A stretch of 64,000 bases of DNA, taken from the NCBI RefSeq assembly GCF_006345805.1, contig NC_043000.1:1922001-1986000 (forward strand), in the 5' to 3' direction. The first letter of the stretch is position 1, and every line of letters begins with the position of its first letter. Both the position numbers and the translations under genes were made by a program. This document shows, one piece after another, positions 8,901 to 25,880 of this stretch. Source of the DNA: Octopus sinensis. Taxonomy: Eukaryota. The notes beneath the pieces were generated by a model. The model saw only the letters and a list, made by a program, of their open reading frames with translations. It was not told the DNA's origin and did no database searches.

Positions 8901-10201
8901 CGTTGGCGCAAATTTTTGTTTCCATATTCGTTTAATACACAATTTTGGCAAGTCTTCTGCCCCTCCCACAAACCACCCTTTAAAAAAAAATTATTTTGTT
9001 TCAACACAAACCCCTCTTTTCGGCCACGGGGAATACGAATCTGCGAAAAAATTGGGAAAAATCAACATTTCAAAATTACCACCGCACCCCTATTTCCATC
9101 ATTTAAAACTTTTTTCAGAGTTTTTTTTTTCAAAATATGCATAAAGGGTTTTAGGGTTAATGTTGGTGAAAAAATCAAAATTGAAGAAGTTGTGGGGAAA
9201 GGGGTGTGTGGAAATTTCACAATGCCGATTTTTGGCAATTTTCCGGAGCCTCTGTATCCGAAAACGGGGATTTTTGGCAAAAAAATTTACAAAAATAAAC
9301 AAATTTGGGAGAAAATGGGGGTGGAGACGGGCAGAAGTCTTTTCCACATTTTTTTTACACCTATTACACTTGATTTTTCCTTTTTTGTTTTGGCAACCGG
9401 GAGTGAGAGTCAATATTAACCGAATCTTGTATGCATTTAATATTTGTAAAATAATAAAAATTCGTGTACCGTGAAGATACGCAAGTATTTAGCAGTTTGA
9501 ACAGCACCCTTAGAAGAAATGGGAAGTCTGTTAAATACAAAACTAAAGCTTATTCTATTTCACAACTTTCATTAACGCTTTTCACAGACATGAGGAAACC
9601 ATTACTAGTTACTTTGATTCTTTATTTGCAAAAAAACCCCCAGTAATTTTATTCAGCTGAATACACGTCATTGATTGGTTGAAATTACCAAAATACTACA
9701 ACTTTAACGTGAAATAGCTTCATAAATATAAGCTTTTCTCAAAAACGCTAAGAGTAAAAGATGTTTTATATGACACATTCTACCAGTGGCCGAAGTTTGA
9801 AAGTGTTTGGTTACAAAAAATTAGTCAAAAAGTAAAGATCCAATTATGCCGTTCTTTTTTTGGTTTGCTACTGTGTTTAAGGGTACTAAATAATATTCAC
9901 AAAATTTATTTACAACAAACAAAGTGTGGTGTGGTGATGAGGGAGTGTGACAGAGAGGGAGGGAGCGGAAGTGGGTCTTGCAGGTCTCGCAGGGCGCATG
10001 CGCCGGCGGAAGCGGAAGTGAGAGACAGAACGCACGTGCGGCATCGACCAGGGCAGTGAGACTCGAGAACAACGCCAAGACGACAAGACGCTAGCAAGTT
10101 GGCTCAAGGCGAATCCGGCTTCATCTCTGCAGGTAAGACCAAATTACACTTCTAATTCTTTTCCTTGTTCTGTTACGCTCCTTTTCACCACACTTATCAC
10201 A

Positions 10202-10213
10202 AGCTATTTCGGC
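10202..10213 (+). promoter_or_regulatory. Putative primer-binding site complementary to tRNA-Phe nt 1-12
   Basis: AGCTATTTCGGC abuts the 5' LTR; its reverse complement GCCGAAATAGCT is the 5' end of human and Drosophila tRNA-Phe(GAA); second copy at 10706-10717 on minus. Confidence 0.7.
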
Positions 10214-10663
10214 CATCGGCATCGAACGCACGTTCGGGAGCTTCTGTAGCTCGACCGACATGATGTCGGGAAAGCCGGTCACGAACGCTAACCTGACCGT
10301 GCGTTCTAGCGACTCTCCCTCATATCCCGCAAGTTTTGCCAACCTTCTAAGCTCGCCGGCGAACACGTCCACCTGCTGTCCTGTCCACCTCATCCTACCC
10401 AGTCGAGTGTACGCTTCGAACATTCCTTCCGCGAAGGCCTCCATAAGTCAGATCTCCACCTTGTCCGCGCTGCGTTGGTCCGTTTCCTCCATCTCCAGAT
10501 ATAACGCCAATGCTGGGCCATCCAAATACAACGGCATAAAACTAGCCAGGTCAGCTATGCCGTGTAGCTTCGCCACCAACTTCACCCTCCTCAACCAAGC
10601 GACCACGTCGGTGTCGCTGCAAAACGGTGTTATAGGGTCGCGTGAAATCATAGCAGTCTGCAT
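10214..10663 (-). pseudogene. gag: gag remnant, inverted relative to the LTRs
   Basis: DVVAWLRRVKLVAKL..ASFMPLYLDGPALALYLEM..EAFAEGMFEAY..VDVFAGELRRLA; one in-frame TGA at 10448-10450; truncated at 10214. Confidence 0.75.
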
Positions 10664-10847
10664 AATTTTTATTTTTTATTTTCACGAAACCGAGTGATTA
10701 TTTTTGCCGAAATAGCTTGTGATAAGTGTGGTGAAAAGGAGCGTAACAGAACAAGGAAAAGAATTAGAAGTGTAATTTGGTCTTACCTGCAGAGATGAAG
10801 CCGGATTCGCCTTGAGCCAACTTGCTAGCGTCTTGTCGTCTTGGCGT

Positions 10848-11315
10848 CGTTGTGTTTTGGTACAACATGTCGCCCAGATCAGGACAGGCCGAGGAGTCGG
10901 TGCCACACAGGGCAATATTCAGGTACGAGTGGAGGCATCCGTGTACTACATCAATGCGACCCGGGGCAGAGGAAGAGCACGCCTTCGTGCAGGTCGGGGA
11001 GGAAGTCTGGGTGAAACCCCCGAACGCACGGTGTACATCGCAATGGGGAAAGGGGACAATAACCTCCGTAAATTCAAAGAATACATCTCGGTAGATGGTA
11101 TGCCACGCCACGTTTTGGACATACGGAGGATTGTCCATGCCCCGGAGGATGGGACAAGCAACAGTGGGCAAGACGATAACAACAGACAGGATGACGAGGT
11201 CGGCAGCAACACGCCAGAAACAAGTCCTAGGGTCGCACTGCGACCACAGAGGGAGCGGCACCCTCCTTCCTGGTTGGCTGACTACGAAACCAGTTTCAGG
11301 TGCGGGAGCGAGTGA
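10848..11315 (+). pseudogene. Integrase C-terminal remnant
   Basis: VFWYNMSPRSGQ..FRYEWRHP..VGEEVWVKPP..WGKG, then a frameshift to ISVDGMPRHVLDIRR; lies just upstream of the PPT. Confidence 0.65.
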
Positions 11316-12029
11316 GGAAGCCGGTTCAGTGATCTATAGATCAGGGGGGCGTGTGGTGTGGTGATGAGGGAGTGTGACAGAGAGGGAGGGAGCGGAAGTG
11401 GGTCTTGCAGGTCTCGCAGGGCGCATGCGCCGGCGGAAGCGGAAGTGAGAGACAGAACGCACGTGCGGCATCTTGTTCTGTTACGCTCCTTTTCACCACA
11501 CTTATCACACAAAGTTTATACACAATTGTACAACATAAAAACATGATTTAAATGAACGTAATGTTAAAAGGTCAATAGACACACGCAATTATTACTACTA
11601 AAAATGTATATGTTTCTTAAAAGCTGGAGATGAATTGTGAATAAGATAAAAATTTTCCAAGTTATTGGTTTCATCAATCAAGTTAAAATACATGCATAGA
11701 AGACAGGTTACAAAAGGTGGATGAAAAAGCTGATAAACTGGGTTCCAAGAGACTGCAAAAAAACAAAAATAGAATAAAATTAAAAAAACAGAAAGAGGAC
11801 GACCCTGAACAACATGAAAGGATGAACTGGATATATTTGACAATAATTAAGGGTTCCTTATAACTGGGGACGGATCTCTAAAGCTGAAAGTTATAGAGAT
11901 AAGAGGAAGAGGGAAAGGCTGATATGGTTGATTGGTTGGTAAACGTGGTGTCCATACAATATTTTATGTATATACTCTTAAGTTAGAGTTATTAGTCTGC
12001 AAAATAATCATAGAGGTTTCTGTTGTGTT

Positions 12030-12428
12030 AGCGAATGGCTGTGTGGTAAGTAGCTTGTTTACCAAACACATGGTTCCAGGTTCAGTCCCACTGCGTGGCA
12101 TCTTGGGCAAGTGTCTTCTACTATAGCCTTGGGCCGACCAAAGCCTTGTGAGTGAATTTGGTAGATGGAAACTGAAAGAAGCCCGTCGTATATATGTATA
12201 TATATATATATATGCGTTTGTGTGTCTGTGTTTGTGCCCCTAGCATTGCTTGACAAACCGATGCTGGTTTGTTTATGTCCCCATTACTTAGCGGTTCGGC
12301 AAAAAGAGACCGATAGAATAAGTACTGGGCTTACAAAAGAATAAGTCCCGGGGTCGAGTTGCTCGATTAAAGGTGGTGTTCCAGCATGGCCGCAGTCAAA
12401 TGACTGAAACAAGTAAAAGAGTAAAGAG
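12030..12428 (+). mobile_element. SINE family B
   Basis: Matches the other family B copies. Confidence 0.8.
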
Positions 12429-14990: not shown

Positions 14991-15158
14991 GGCGCAGGAG
15001 TGGCTGTATGGTAGGTAGCTTGCTTACCAACCACATGGTTCTGGGTTCAGTCCCAATGCGTGGGACCTTGGGCAAGTGTCTTCTACTATAGCTTTGGGCC
15101 AACCAAAGTCTTGTGAGTGGATTTGGTAGATGGAAACTGAAAGAAGCCTGTCGTACAA

Positions 15159-15210
<52 letters not shown>

Positions 15211-15466
15211 TATATAATATATATATATATGTGTGTGTGTGTGAGTGTGTGTGTGTGTGTGTCCGTGTTTGTCCCCCCAACATCACTTGACAACCGATGC
15301 TGTTGTGTTTACATCCCCGTAACTTAGCGATTCGGCAAAAGAGACCAATAGAATAAGTACTAGGCTTACAAAGAATAAGTCCCGGGGTCGACTTGCTCGA
15401 CTAAAGGTGGTGCTCCAGCATGGCCACAGTCAAATGACTGAAACAAGTAAAAGAGTAAAAAGAGAG
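14991..15466 (+). mobile_element. SINE family B with a long (TA)n
   Basis: Family head and tail present. Confidence 0.85.
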
Positions 15467-17475: not shown

Positions 17476-18007
17476 TCTTTATATATATATAAAACTGTAG
17501 TTTTATATATATAAAACTGTAGTTGTGTGAGTGTCTGTCCCCTTCGATTTAGATTCCTAACTACTCCCACATTTTGCGGTGCAGTTTAACCAAATTCGGG
17601 TATCTTATAGTCGTGAGTCATATCGAGCTCGTCTGAGTATTAGCGCGCGTCTACGATGAGTCTACGATTTTAAAAATAATTTAACATCATTTTTTATTCC
17701 ATTTTAATGCATAAAATGCATCGTATGTCGATGGCGGCGGAGTTGGCGTCCACGCTCACAGCTGCACCTGTTTGCTTCTCCCCCTTCCCTCCCTCGTGAA
17801 GCTGTGGGGAAGGGAGTGTAAAGAAATCAACGTCGTAATGCGTTGTGAAGGAAACCAGCGTTCTTTTAGAACAACGACTTCATGGCTTGAAGACACCAAA
17901 ACAAAAATGGCTAAGAAAGCCCGAATTTATAAGGGAAGTAACTCTCTAAAAATGCTTATATAGTTATTTCCCTTACAAACCCGAGCAACGCCGGGCGATA
18001 CTGCTAG
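17476..18007 (+). mobile_element. Non-autonomous Helitron, copy 1
   Basis: 5' (TA)nAAA start; 3' hairpin CCCGAGCAACGCCGGG then CTAG. Confidence 0.75.
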
Positions 18008-18964
18008 TCTATATATATAAAAGTGAAGTTGTGTGAGTGTCTGTCTCCTACGATTTAGATTCCTAACTACTCTCACATTTTGCAGTGCACTTTAACCAAA
18101 TTCGGGTATCTTATAGTCGTGATTCATATCGAGCCCGTCTGGGTATAAGCGCACGTCTACGATGAGTCTACGATTTTAAAAATAATTTACCATAATATTT
18201 TTCCATTTTAACGCATATTTTTTCCCTCCCTCGTGAAGCTGTGGGGAAGGAAATCAACGTCGTAAAGCGTTGTCAAGGAGACCAGCGTTCTGTTAGAACA
18301 ACGACTTCATGGCTTGAAGACACCAAAACAAAAATGGCTAAGAAAGCCCGAAAGCAAATTCTACAAAATCGGGAAACATGCCACACGGGGAAGGTTTCCC
18401 GTGCAAATAATTTGCACAACCGAATGTTATAGTTGTTGCACAACTTTTACTTAAAAAATATTATCCAAACACAAACTTTTGAAGGCAATATTGTATGGCG
18501 ATGGTACTTGTGAAATATGGTAATGGATTTAGTAGCCAAAAGGAGAGAGCAGAGGCATATTATGGTGGTGGTGGAGGCGGTGGTAGTGGCAGCGGTGGTG
18601 GCGGTGGTGCTGGTAGTGGTGATGGTGGTCGTGGTTGTGGTGGTGGTCGTGGTTGTGGTGGTCGTCGTGTTTGTGGTGGTGGTGGTGGGGGTGGTGGTGG
18701 TGGTCATGGGTATTAGCGCACGTCTACGATGAGTCTACGATTTAAAAAATAATTTACCATCATTTTTTTCCATTTTAACGCATATTTTTTTTAATATAAG
18801 GGAAGTAACTCTCTAAAAATGTCTACGATGAGTCAACGATTAAAAAAAAAATTTACTATAATTTGTTTTTCCATTTTCAATGCATTTTTTTGCTATAACT
18901 CTCTAAAAATGCTTATATAGTTATTTCCCTTACAAACCCGAGCAACGCCGGGCGATACTGCTAG
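18008..18964 (+). mobile_element. Non-autonomous Helitron, copy 2 (head-to-tail), carrying a (GGT)n tract
   Basis: Junction CTAG|TCTATATATATAAA at 18007/18008; same 3' hairpin and CTAG; (GGT)n at about 18560-18705. Confidence 0.8.
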
Positions 18965-19294
18965 TATATATATATATATATATATAATCAGTTTCACAGT
19001 ACTGGGTTTTCAAACGAAAGTGACCTTTAAATATTGAAGGAATGTCATCCGAGAAAGACAGGCACCTATATATATTTATATATATCAAAGGAAACGGTAA
19101 AGGTGTCAAGACATTAACTAGTTCGAAAGTTCAAACATCTACATGTTGTACCAAATAGCAACATTCTGTGATTATTGACTTCACGGTTGTTAAAGAAGCA
19201 GCCGAAATTTTGGGGTTTCATTTCTATAGAGAGAACTCTCCAGTTCTTCAGTATTTGGTGTCTGTTACAGTTGTCTCACCTTGCAGCTCCAACA

Positions 19295-24113: not shown

Positions 24114-25880
24114 TTAAAACATTAAAAGAAAACAAAGCAATTCATATTTTCATCTTTTAGATTTATTATTTTTCAGACTACACTTAACATTTCTAGGATG
24201 AAGAACCCACTTCTTTCTCTCAAACTCACATACCTGTAGGTATGAAACATAGATACCTGGCACATCCATCTCACACACATATCTAGGATACAGTATACAC
24301 TTCACACACATAGGCATATGTCTAGGATGCTGCACTCTACAGGCACACACACATTTATGACAAAATGTCTACACGCCGCTAGATTAGTACACACATACAC
24401 ATGCAATGAATTACCACAGTCACACATGCATATGCATCTAGAATGGAGTACCCACCTTATTTATGTTTACGTAGCAAACTGCATCTGAAATAAATCATCG
24501 ATTTGTGACTCTGAAATTTTATTCAGTAAAACTTTTGAAACCTATCCACAGTTTAACTTTTACTGTAGAAGATGTACATGTGTCGAAAAAAGCTATGGAA
24601 ACTGTCTCTGTGTTAAATTAACAAATAAATGAATTATATTTTTACCCAAATTAGTTTCTTGTTTGCTTAAGTATTTCAACTTTAGTAAAATATGAAATGG
24701 AAAAGACAAACTTTTCAATTTGATATGAGTAATTGTGTTAATTGTGTTACATTTTATACCAACGATAAAAGTTAATGACACGTTTAACAATGATTATAGA
24801 AAGAACAGAAATTCACATTTTTTCTTAACTGTCTTTCATAGGGTTCCACCTGCTTAACATTAGCAAGGATTGATTTTATGGTGGAGGGAATTTACTCTTT
24901 TACTTGTTTCAGTCATTTGACCGTGGCCATGCTGGAGCATTGATTTTTTTTTTTTAATAACTTCTATTCAGTCATTTGTTTTAAAATGACTATATTTAAA
25001 TTAAAACCATCTGTCATAATTTTATTTCTGAACCTTTTGCTACTATATAATGATTATTTTACTAAATTCTTAATCATTTCCAAAATTAATAGAAACAGCT
25101 AAGCATTGTTTTTGATTAGAAATATGGTTATGGGGGAATTAATTTATTACAGTATTATATTCCATATAAAGATGGAAATCTAGGCTATGACCATTTTCCA
25201 ATTTCATTAAATATGTGCAATCAATAAAACCAAAGACATTTTCCCACTCATTTATGTCCCATTTATTTCACTCCTGTGTGAAACTTTATTTTTCCTTAAA
25301 AAAATGATGTGAAAATTTGCTGAAAATTTTCTCTTTTGTGCTCCGACTTTTTTTCTAAATAAAGATTTAAGACTTGATTCATTCCTTTTGAAACCCATTT
25401 ATTTATGTGGATGGCTGTGTGAAGAAAAAGTTGAAAGATGAATGGTAGTCTTTTATATTTATTTAGTTTTTAAATCGCCTTTCCAGGGCATCTTTCAGAC
25501 TAGTCCATTCGGCATTCAGCTTCAATATCTGTTTTGGAAAATAAGGATGGGATAGAAATTCTAATGAATAACCAGCTTTGGGATGGAAGGAAGATAACTG
25601 GAAGCGAAAATGTTCAGTGTAGGTTCTAAGAGTTGAACAATACAGTACAGATCATGAAAAGAGAGACCTGTATATTGAGTGACTGAATAGAGAAGATGTG
25701 TAGTTTAAGTAATAGTATGAGGGACTGAGAAAGGAAAACATCTGTGAATTAGCTGTGTTGCTGAGTGAGTCTTTGCCAACCTGTAAAATATCTTTCTTTA
25801 GGATGTGTGTGTAGCAGTAGTATGAACAATATTGTATTGTGAGACCTACTTGATGTTTGTACAGTGATTAGAGCTAAAAA

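Follow-up and report, generated by a model that had tools for sequence, protein, structure and literature searches.

A 12-Nucleotide Site Complementary to the 5' End of tRNA-Phe Is a Candidate Primer-binding Site in a Family of Compact Long Terminal Repeat Retrotransposons

The DNA analyzed here comprises 64,000 nucleotides (nt) of the Octopus sinensis genome (contig NC_043000.1, positions 1,922,001 to 1,986,000 of the forward strand), the whole of which is referred to below as the window. It contains a rearranged copy of a long terminal repeat (LTR) retrotransposon whose 5' LTR is directly followed by the 12-nt sequence AGCTATTTCGGC, and the original prediction held that this 12-mer is a primer-binding site complementary to the 5' end of tRNA-Phe. 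The features of this copy, in window positions, are the following.

9920-9924, no strand: left target-site duplication CAAAG, an identical pentamer being present at 11510-11514 after the 3' LTR.
9925-10201, plus strand: 5' LTR of 277 bp (TGTGG...ATCACA), 100% identical by BLAST against the window to both retained parts of the 3' LTR, with its termini read from the sequence.
10202-10213, plus strand: predicted primer-binding site AGCTATTTCGGC, complementary to tRNA-Phe nt 1-12, joined here to antisense gag and not to a normal leader.
10214-10663, minus strand: inverted N-terminal gag fragment of about 150 codons, with its ATG at 10663-10661 and an in-frame TGA at 10450-10448 (from the listing of open reading frames, ORFs).
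10664-10705, minus strand: native leader of 42 nt from the 12-mer to the gag ATG, read from the sequence.
10706-10717, minus strand: the other copy of the 12-mer, here in the native order of LTR end, 12-mer, leader and gag.
10718-10851, minus strand: inverted partial LTR corresponding to LTR nt 144-277, 99% identical (inverted-repeat search and BLAST).
10852-11291, plus strand: remnant of the integrase C terminus (pol residues about 845-985), with one stop and one frameshift (tblastn, ORFs).
11330-11351, plus strand: palindrome TGATCTATAGATCA and then polypurine tract GGGGGGCG, abutting the 3' LTR.
11352-11509, plus strand: 3' LTR from which LTR nt 122-239 are deleted internally, the retained LTR nt 1-121 and 240-277 both being 100% identical by BLAST.
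11510-11514, no strand: right target-site duplication CAAAG.

The end of the 5' LTR was set independently of the 12-mer, by the 3' LTR and the CAAAG duplication, and the junction reads ...CACTTATCACA/AGCTATTTCGGC/CATCGG..., with the 12-mer at 10202-10213. The placement of the 12-mer directly after the 5' LTR and its inverted repetition at 10706-10717 were thereby confirmed, and the LTRs, which are 100% identical in their matching parts, show TG..CA termini and are flanked by the duplication. With up to one mismatch allowed, the 12-mer and its reverse-complement copy are the only matches in the 64 kb, where 0.13 would be expected. These two copies are the arms of one 146-nt inverted duplication (10068-10213 and 10706-10851) and were therefore counted as a single event. 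When the inverted block (10214-10851) is read on the minus strand, it presents the last 134 nt of the LTR, the 12-mer, the 42-nt leader and about 150 gag codons with one in-frame stop, and hence it is the minus-strand copy at 10706-10717 that shows the site in its native surroundings. Only the gag N terminus and the integrase C terminus are retained from the coding region. By tblastn, the gag fragment is 60% identical to residues 5-152 of the gag of a relative, L005, and the integrase remnant shows 58% and 43% identity to the L005 pol; the gag fragment is also 77% identical to O. sinensis LOC118764022. The window copy is a dead, rearranged derivative of an LTR element. Its protein fragments gave no Pfam match, and its classification was therefore taken from relatives.

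The 12-mer is the exact complement of GCCGAAATAGCT, which gives a 12/12 match with tRNA-Phe nt 1-12. A published forward primer for human tRNA-Phe(GAA) opens with GCCGAAATAGCT (5' end GCCGAAATAGCTCAG...) (PMC10505166), and a Drosophila northern probe for the tRNA-Phe 5' end terminates with the complement of GCCGAAATAGCT, so that this tRNA also has the 5' end GCCGAAATAGCTCAG... (PMC7038984). These two reagents bore out the match claimed by the original prediction. The orientation is also as it stated, with the primer 3' end pointing toward U5: U12 of tRNA-Phe lies opposite the first base after U5, and the direction of extension is into U5. The pairing would take in the complete 5' acceptor strand of the tRNA as well as U8, A9 and the initial three bases of the D stem, and the predicted duplexes between site and tRNA-Phe have energies of -18.7 to -23.5 kcal/mol. 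Given about 50 cytosolic tRNAs, we estimate the probability of a 12/12 match to one of their 5' ends at a fixed position at about 3e-6, and chance is excluded because the 12-mer is conserved across the family to which the window copy belongs.

This family consists of compact gag-pol LTR elements of 4.2-4.4 kb that encode a CCHC gag and a pol of about 950 amino acids with protease, reverse transcriptase (RT; RVT_1), DUF7047, RNase H (RVT_3/RNase_H) and integrase. At least 577 pol homologues were found, the named hosts of which include Argonauta, Aplysia, Petrolisthes and Oratosquilla. Five copies with highly similar LTRs are the following.

L009, Petrolisthes: LTR of 274 bp, LTR identity 100%, target-site duplication TAAAC.
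L010, Argonauta: LTR of 351 bp, LTR identity 100%, target-site duplication TCAGT.
L011, Aplysia: LTR of 214 bp, LTR identity 99%, target-site duplication GATCA.
L132, Oratosquilla: LTR of about 390 bp, LTR identity 97%.
L133, a further element: LTR of 237 bp, LTR identity 99.6%.

Because the LTRs of these five copies are 97-100% identical and 5-bp target-site duplications were verified for three of them (L009, L010 and L011), the insertions that carry the site must be recent. All five keep the 12-mer and lack a TGG-type site, as the original prediction had anticipated for intact copies. In 12 elements, whose named hosts number at least five, the 12-mer follows the LTR without a gap, and the information content per column peaks across the LTR end (Y-ACA) and the 12-mer before dropping to the background level at base 13. 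Thus, position, length and sequence of the site are all conserved. In many copies the gag ATG lies 4-25 nt past the 12-mer, and there is therefore no room for another site; no TGG-type site was found before the gag ATG, AGCTAT... standing directly after the LTR in all 12 elements.

The site exists in three variants, each of which has its own tRNA counterpart. AGCTATTTCGGC, which pairs with GCCGAAAUAGCU, is present in the Octopus window, Argonauta, Aplysia and two further loci and corresponds to GAA at tRNA nt 4-6; AGCTATCTAGGC, which pairs with GCCUAGAUAGCU, is present in Petrolisthes, Oratosquilla and four further distinct elements and corresponds to UAG; and AGCTATCCCGGC, which pairs with GCCGGGAUAGCU, was found at one locus and corresponds to GGG. 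All differences between the variants fall at tRNA acceptor-stem positions 4-6. The site bases opposite tRNA nt 7-12 (AUAGCU) are invariant, and the sole change opposite nt 1-3 affects the last site base of one copy, L002. Variation is thus confined to a segment of the acceptor stem, and neither an alternative site nor a self-primer is present. In a weakly resolved pol tree the elements with the UAG-type site are not monophyletic, which is consistent with the site tracking the host and not the lineage of the element.

When metagenome contigs were scanned for GCCTAGATAGCTCAGTNGGNAGAGC, most matches proved to be bacterial tRNA-Phe, and about 15 were copies of an animal-type tRNA-Phe(GAA) with the 5' end GCCTAGATAGCT, which ARAGORN calls tRNA-Phe(gaa) and which carries a compensatory 3' acceptor strand, TCTGGGC. 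The D, anticodon and T arms of these copies are identical to what we take to be those of Drosophila and human (insect or vertebrate) tRNA-Phe. One contig with a UAG-type tRNA-Phe also contains SLC12A9 exons, whose best named matches are about 60% identical and scattered over animal phyla, and it is therefore animal DNA. As judged from these sequences, the site variant of the crustacean elements is exactly complementary to the sequence with which a real animal tRNA-Phe(GAA) begins (GCCUAGAUAGCU), the animals that carry it being not necessarily crustaceans.

The copies starting GCCTAGA (L013, L078, L079, L085, L094, L096, L118 and L121; L073, L084 and L125) have a conserved 3' flank of one of two kinds, ..CCCCAGGTTAGCCCCGGGG.. 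or ..TTACATACCCTCA..CCTGGG, which suggests that some of them may be tRNA-Phe-derived short interspersed nuclear elements (SINEs) or tandem units.

The comparative data strongly support the view that reverse transcription in this family would be primed by the 5' end of tRNA-Phe, and we regard it as probable that the 12-mer is the minus-strand primer-binding site of a compact gag-pol LTR family of molluscs and crustaceans, pairing with nt 1-12 of the host cytoplasmic tRNA-Phe(GAA), with synthesis starting from the 3'-OH of U12. According to this proposal, the primer would be a 12-nt 5'-terminal fragment of tRNA-Phe, paired along its full length, from the last nucleotide of which, U12, the RT would proceed into U5. 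Because priming needs a 3'-OH at nt 12, the tRNA would have to be cut between U12 and C13. The zinc-knuckle domain of Gag might open the tRNA and anneal it to the site, and the cut could be the work of a host nuclease or, as in Tf1, of the element's own RNase H on the 12-bp RNA:RNA duplex. Synthesis of plus-strand strong-stop DNA would then run off the 5' end of the 12-nt primer, and this run-off would define the 12-nt site with no need for a stop at a modified base; we know of no RT-blocking modification within nt 1-12 of tRNA-Phe, where, to our knowledge, yeast tRNA-Phe carries only m2G10. Over time, the site would follow the tRNA-Phe sequence of the host. We lean only slightly toward the more extensive claim that a whole protostome LTR clade primes from a 12-nt host tRNA-Phe 5' fragment cut by its own RNase H on the RNA:RNA duplex, the site being rewritten to the acceptor stem of each host.

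Priming by half tRNAs provides the closest precedent for a primer of this kind. The primers of copia and Ty5 are about 39 nt long, derive from tRNA-iMet by a cut in the anticodon arm and are paired only through their 3' part, and in the Candida element Tca2/pCal half-tRNA priming uses tRNA-Arg. As in copia and Ty5, the primer here would be a 5' fragment of a host tRNA, as its complementarity suggests, with a 3' end formed by cleavage inside the tRNA, and the site has neither TGG nor complementarity to the CCA end. Unlike in copia and Ty5, the tRNA is tRNA-Phe, the cut would come after nt 12, within the D stem, and all 12 nt of the primer, as far as tRNA nt 1, would be paired. The site pairs with nt 1-12 of tRNA-Phe only and shows no complementarity to the anticodon arm of tRNA-iMet. 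The gene order also differs from that of copia, where integrase precedes RT, since it is protease-RT-RNase H-integrase in this family. With Tf1/sushi elements the family would share an 11-12-bp RNA:RNA duplex directly after the LTR, a primer 3' end that would arise by a cut at the end of the duplex, and plus-strand strong-stop DNA that would form without a modified-base stop; in contrast to Tf1, which uses the 5' end of its own mRNA as primer, the partner is the 5' end of a host tRNA and no self-complement exists. Like retroviruses and Ty3/gypsy elements, the family would use a host tRNA, the site abuts U5, and the layout of LTRs, polypurine tract and 5-bp target-site duplication is the standard one; unlike them, it addresses the opposite end of the tRNA through a site of 12 instead of 18 nt that lacks TGG. 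In 3'-primed elements, plus-strand strong-stop DNA terminates at m1A58 (PMC13191261), a stop that cannot apply to a 5'-end primer. The priming modes distinguished in reviews are three, namely the tRNA 3' end, the "half-tRNA" of copia, for which its use is cited, and the self-priming of Tf1 (PMC5371799).

Nevertheless, several points weigh against priming from the tRNA-Phe 5' end. Two old copies deviate at the site, L002 by a C-to-T change at the last base and L001 by an indel. The latter (O. sinensis, ATTGGTATTTCGGC) was considered as a TGG-type counterexample and set aside, as it is an old gag-only remnant whose LTRs are 89-93% identical and was read as decayed. In the Argonauta element (L010; 4971-4988 and 9027-9036) the LTRs are 100% identical and end in ..TCAAG, not ..ACA, the final G being present in both, so that the LTR terminus is AG and not CA. 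Thirteen nt could pair there, the final G with C13 of tRNA-Phe, and the LTR boundary set by the target-site duplication still implies a 12-nt primer; this discrepancy between a 13-bp potential and a 12-nt boundary favors a measured cut or a pre-made 12-mer. The UAG-type tRNA-Phe is known from metagenome contigs, and some of its copies may be SINE-like or tandem and not bona fide genes. A tRNA beginning with GCCGGGAUAGCU was not found, IMG/VR being without a GCCGGG-type tRNA-Phe, and no tRNA-Phe gene was found in the element-bearing loci, so that the match of host to site is presumed for Octopus, Argonauta, Aplysia, Petrolisthes and Oratosquilla. We also know of no host pathway that cuts inside the D stem, as would be needed for a 3'-OH at nt 12. 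Finally, the proposed priming is deduced from sequence comparison.

Four other explanations of the site were weighed against these data. The same site and pairing could be served by a primer from another source, such as a host-made 5' tRNA-Phe fragment, a pre-tRNA or RNA of a tRNA-Phe-derived SINE, in which case RNase H would not be the cutter. The SINE-like tRNA-Phe units with a conserved 3' flank on animal contigs speak for such a source, as does the Argonauta element, where a 12-nt primer despite a 13-bp potential is more easily explained by a pre-made 12-mer or a measured cut than by cleavage at the end of the duplex. However, known host 5' tRNA fragments are longer than 12 nt (16-35 nt is the range quoted in PMC7515703), and with a longer fragment an unpaired 3' tail would be left opposite the ACA of the LTR end; we consider this explanation unlikely. 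Alternatively, the 12-mer could be a conserved cis element with another role, such as recognition of the ends by integrase, packaging or dimerization, with priming occurring elsewhere and the likeness to tRNA-Phe being fortuitous or regulatory (a decoy or a target of tRNA fragments). In its favor, conservation is by itself no proof of priming. This idea has to contend, however, with the canonical primer-binding position of the 12-mer, with the coincidence of its 3' limit with tRNA nt 1, with the correspondence between its variable positions and the acceptor-stem positions that vary among tRNA-Phe genes (two of the variants being equal to known 5' ends), and with the absence of any further candidate site in the interval from the LTR to the gag ATG, and it appears distinctly improbable.

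Still less can be said for the two remaining explanations. In self-priming of the Tf1/sushi type, the site would pair with the 5' end of the element's own transcript, an RNase H cut would make the primer, and the match to tRNA-Phe would be coincidental. The site is indeed short (12 nt versus 11 in Tf1), lacks TGG and lies directly after the LTR as in self-priming elements, but no exact copy of the primer sequence occurs elsewhere in the 12 loci searched, the window included, and the best pairing of an LTR 12-mer with the site reaches 9-10 of 12 positions in an ungapped scan with G:U allowed. In each of the seven elements tested, 248-500 of 500 shuffled LTRs equaled or exceeded the real pairing, and the match of the variants to real tRNA-Phe 5' ends would be left unexplained. 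The original prediction had named pairing with the element's own 5' end as an outcome that would speak against it; with the pairing within chance and no second copy of the primer sequence, Tf1-type self-priming was rejected, and we regard it as very unlikely. An intact tRNA-Phe could also be anchored by its 5' strand only, with synthesis from its normal 3' CCA end at a nearby site, and opening of the acceptor stem would in fact free the 3' strand of the tRNA. This scheme is scarcely credible, since neither U5 nor the leader contains a recurrent complement of at least 7 nt to the tRNA-Phe 3' end, the one TGGTGCC, which occurs 122 nt upstream in the LTR of the crab element, is missing from the other elements, and the base paired with U12 coincides exactly with the LTR boundary. 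Further complementarity to tRNA-Phe (at least 7 nt, bipartite as in Ty1/Ty3) did not recur near the site either. Priming by a 12-nt tRNA-Phe 5' fragment therefore remains the reading that we prefer.

The rearrangement in the window may bear on the fate of such a primer. The inverted duplication breaks off where the 12-mer ends, and comparison with an intact O. sinensis gag reveals microhomology of 2 nt (GC) at this breakpoint. Any plus-strand strong-stop DNA copied from a 12-nt primer would be expected to stop at just this position, which, for one event with microhomology, is suggestive only. The inverted block stops at LTR nt 144 (window 10851) and is followed by sense-strand integrase sequence. 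As pure conjecture, the inverted part at 10718-10851 could represent R-U5, and, if it was copied up to the 5' end of the genomic RNA, nt 144 (window 10068) would be the transcription start; by the same conjecture, drawn from one rearranged copy, R-U5 would measure 134 nt and U3 143 nt.

With regard to the classification of the family, L005 matches zf-CCHC, gag-asp_proteas, RVT_1, DUF7047, RVT_3 and rve in Pfam, in the order protease-RT-RNase H-integrase, a gene order shared with Ty3/gypsy elements. The RNase H is of the RVT_3/RNase_H type and does not match the RT_RNaseH Pfam families. The nearest solved structures to the L005 pol, at weak E-values, are retroviral (murine leukemia virus and foamy virus for the RT, mouse mammary tumor virus and lentiviruses for the integrase), and the Ty3 structure was not matched by the L005 RT or integrase. 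No match to the BEL/Pao families Peptidase_A17, DUF1758, DUF1759 and DUF5641 was obtained in L005 gag/pol or among the 120 homologues listed. Odin retrotransposons were also considered and set aside, since they occur in cnidarians and possess a dual RNase H. To which superfamily this protostome lineage belongs appears to be unsettled. IMG/VR contained no relative of the pol, and tblastn with gag and pol against 120 metagenome loci retrieved no element.

A G-run, taken as the polypurine tract, precedes every 3' LTR that was checked. Directly 5' of this G-run, most of eight members checked carry the palindrome TGATCT-NN-AGATCA (window 11330-11351; L005 about 4170, L009 about 9618, L011 about 8415, L132 about 8494, L133 about 8858 and L134 about 4006), in place of which Argonauta has a shorter GATG..CATC stem; the palindrome may form a hairpin that positions the cut for the plus-strand primer. 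In Oratosquilla, a tRNA-Val(CAC) gene (L132, 4095-4167, minus strand) precedes the 5' LTR of the element by about 195 bp; in this one case, the proximity may be due to chance or hint at insertion near tRNA genes. In the window itself, ARAGORN and Rfam detected no tRNA or RNA family. A tRNA-like stretch lies near 12030-12100, and a short interspersed repeat ..CAGTCATTTGACTG.GGCCATGCTGGAGCA.. in several copies and other dispersed repeats are present (12377-12425, 15411-15459 and 24891-24939; 12033-12213 and 14998-15178), together with a GGT/GGC-rich tandem array of 9-12-nt period at 18551-18718, within a repeated unit of about 500 bp at 17504-18976.

Priming from the 3' end of a tRNA is treated as a near-hallmark of LTR retroelements, and standard annotation scans tRNA 3' ends only; a recent (2026) metazoan survey likewise relied on just the 3'-terminal 12 nt. 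In such searches this widespread family would pass for one without a primer-binding site. The original prediction knew of no description of priming from a tRNA 5' end, and in the full-text literature we also found neither a report of it nor either 12-mer in a retroelement context, subscription papers and Repbase notes being poorly covered. Priming by tRNA fragments is already known; the variant that uses the tRNA-Phe 5' end, which we could not find described, appears to be new, an earlier description being possible. If the more extensive claim made above for a whole protostome clade is true, it would constitute a fourth priming mode beside the tRNA 3' end, the copia-type half tRNA and Tf1 self-priming, and possibly an evolutionary bridge between tRNA priming and self-priming. 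If the RNase H of the element makes the cut, the family would link Tf1-style duplex cleavage with priming by a host tRNA and would offer a simple 12-bp substrate for an RT that measures and cuts an RNA:RNA duplex. According to PMC7472051, 3' tRNA fragments silence elements via the conventional site, and a site aimed at the tRNA 5' end would escape this silencing. Finally, the three site variants would represent a natural experiment on how primer-binding sites follow the evolution of a host tRNA.

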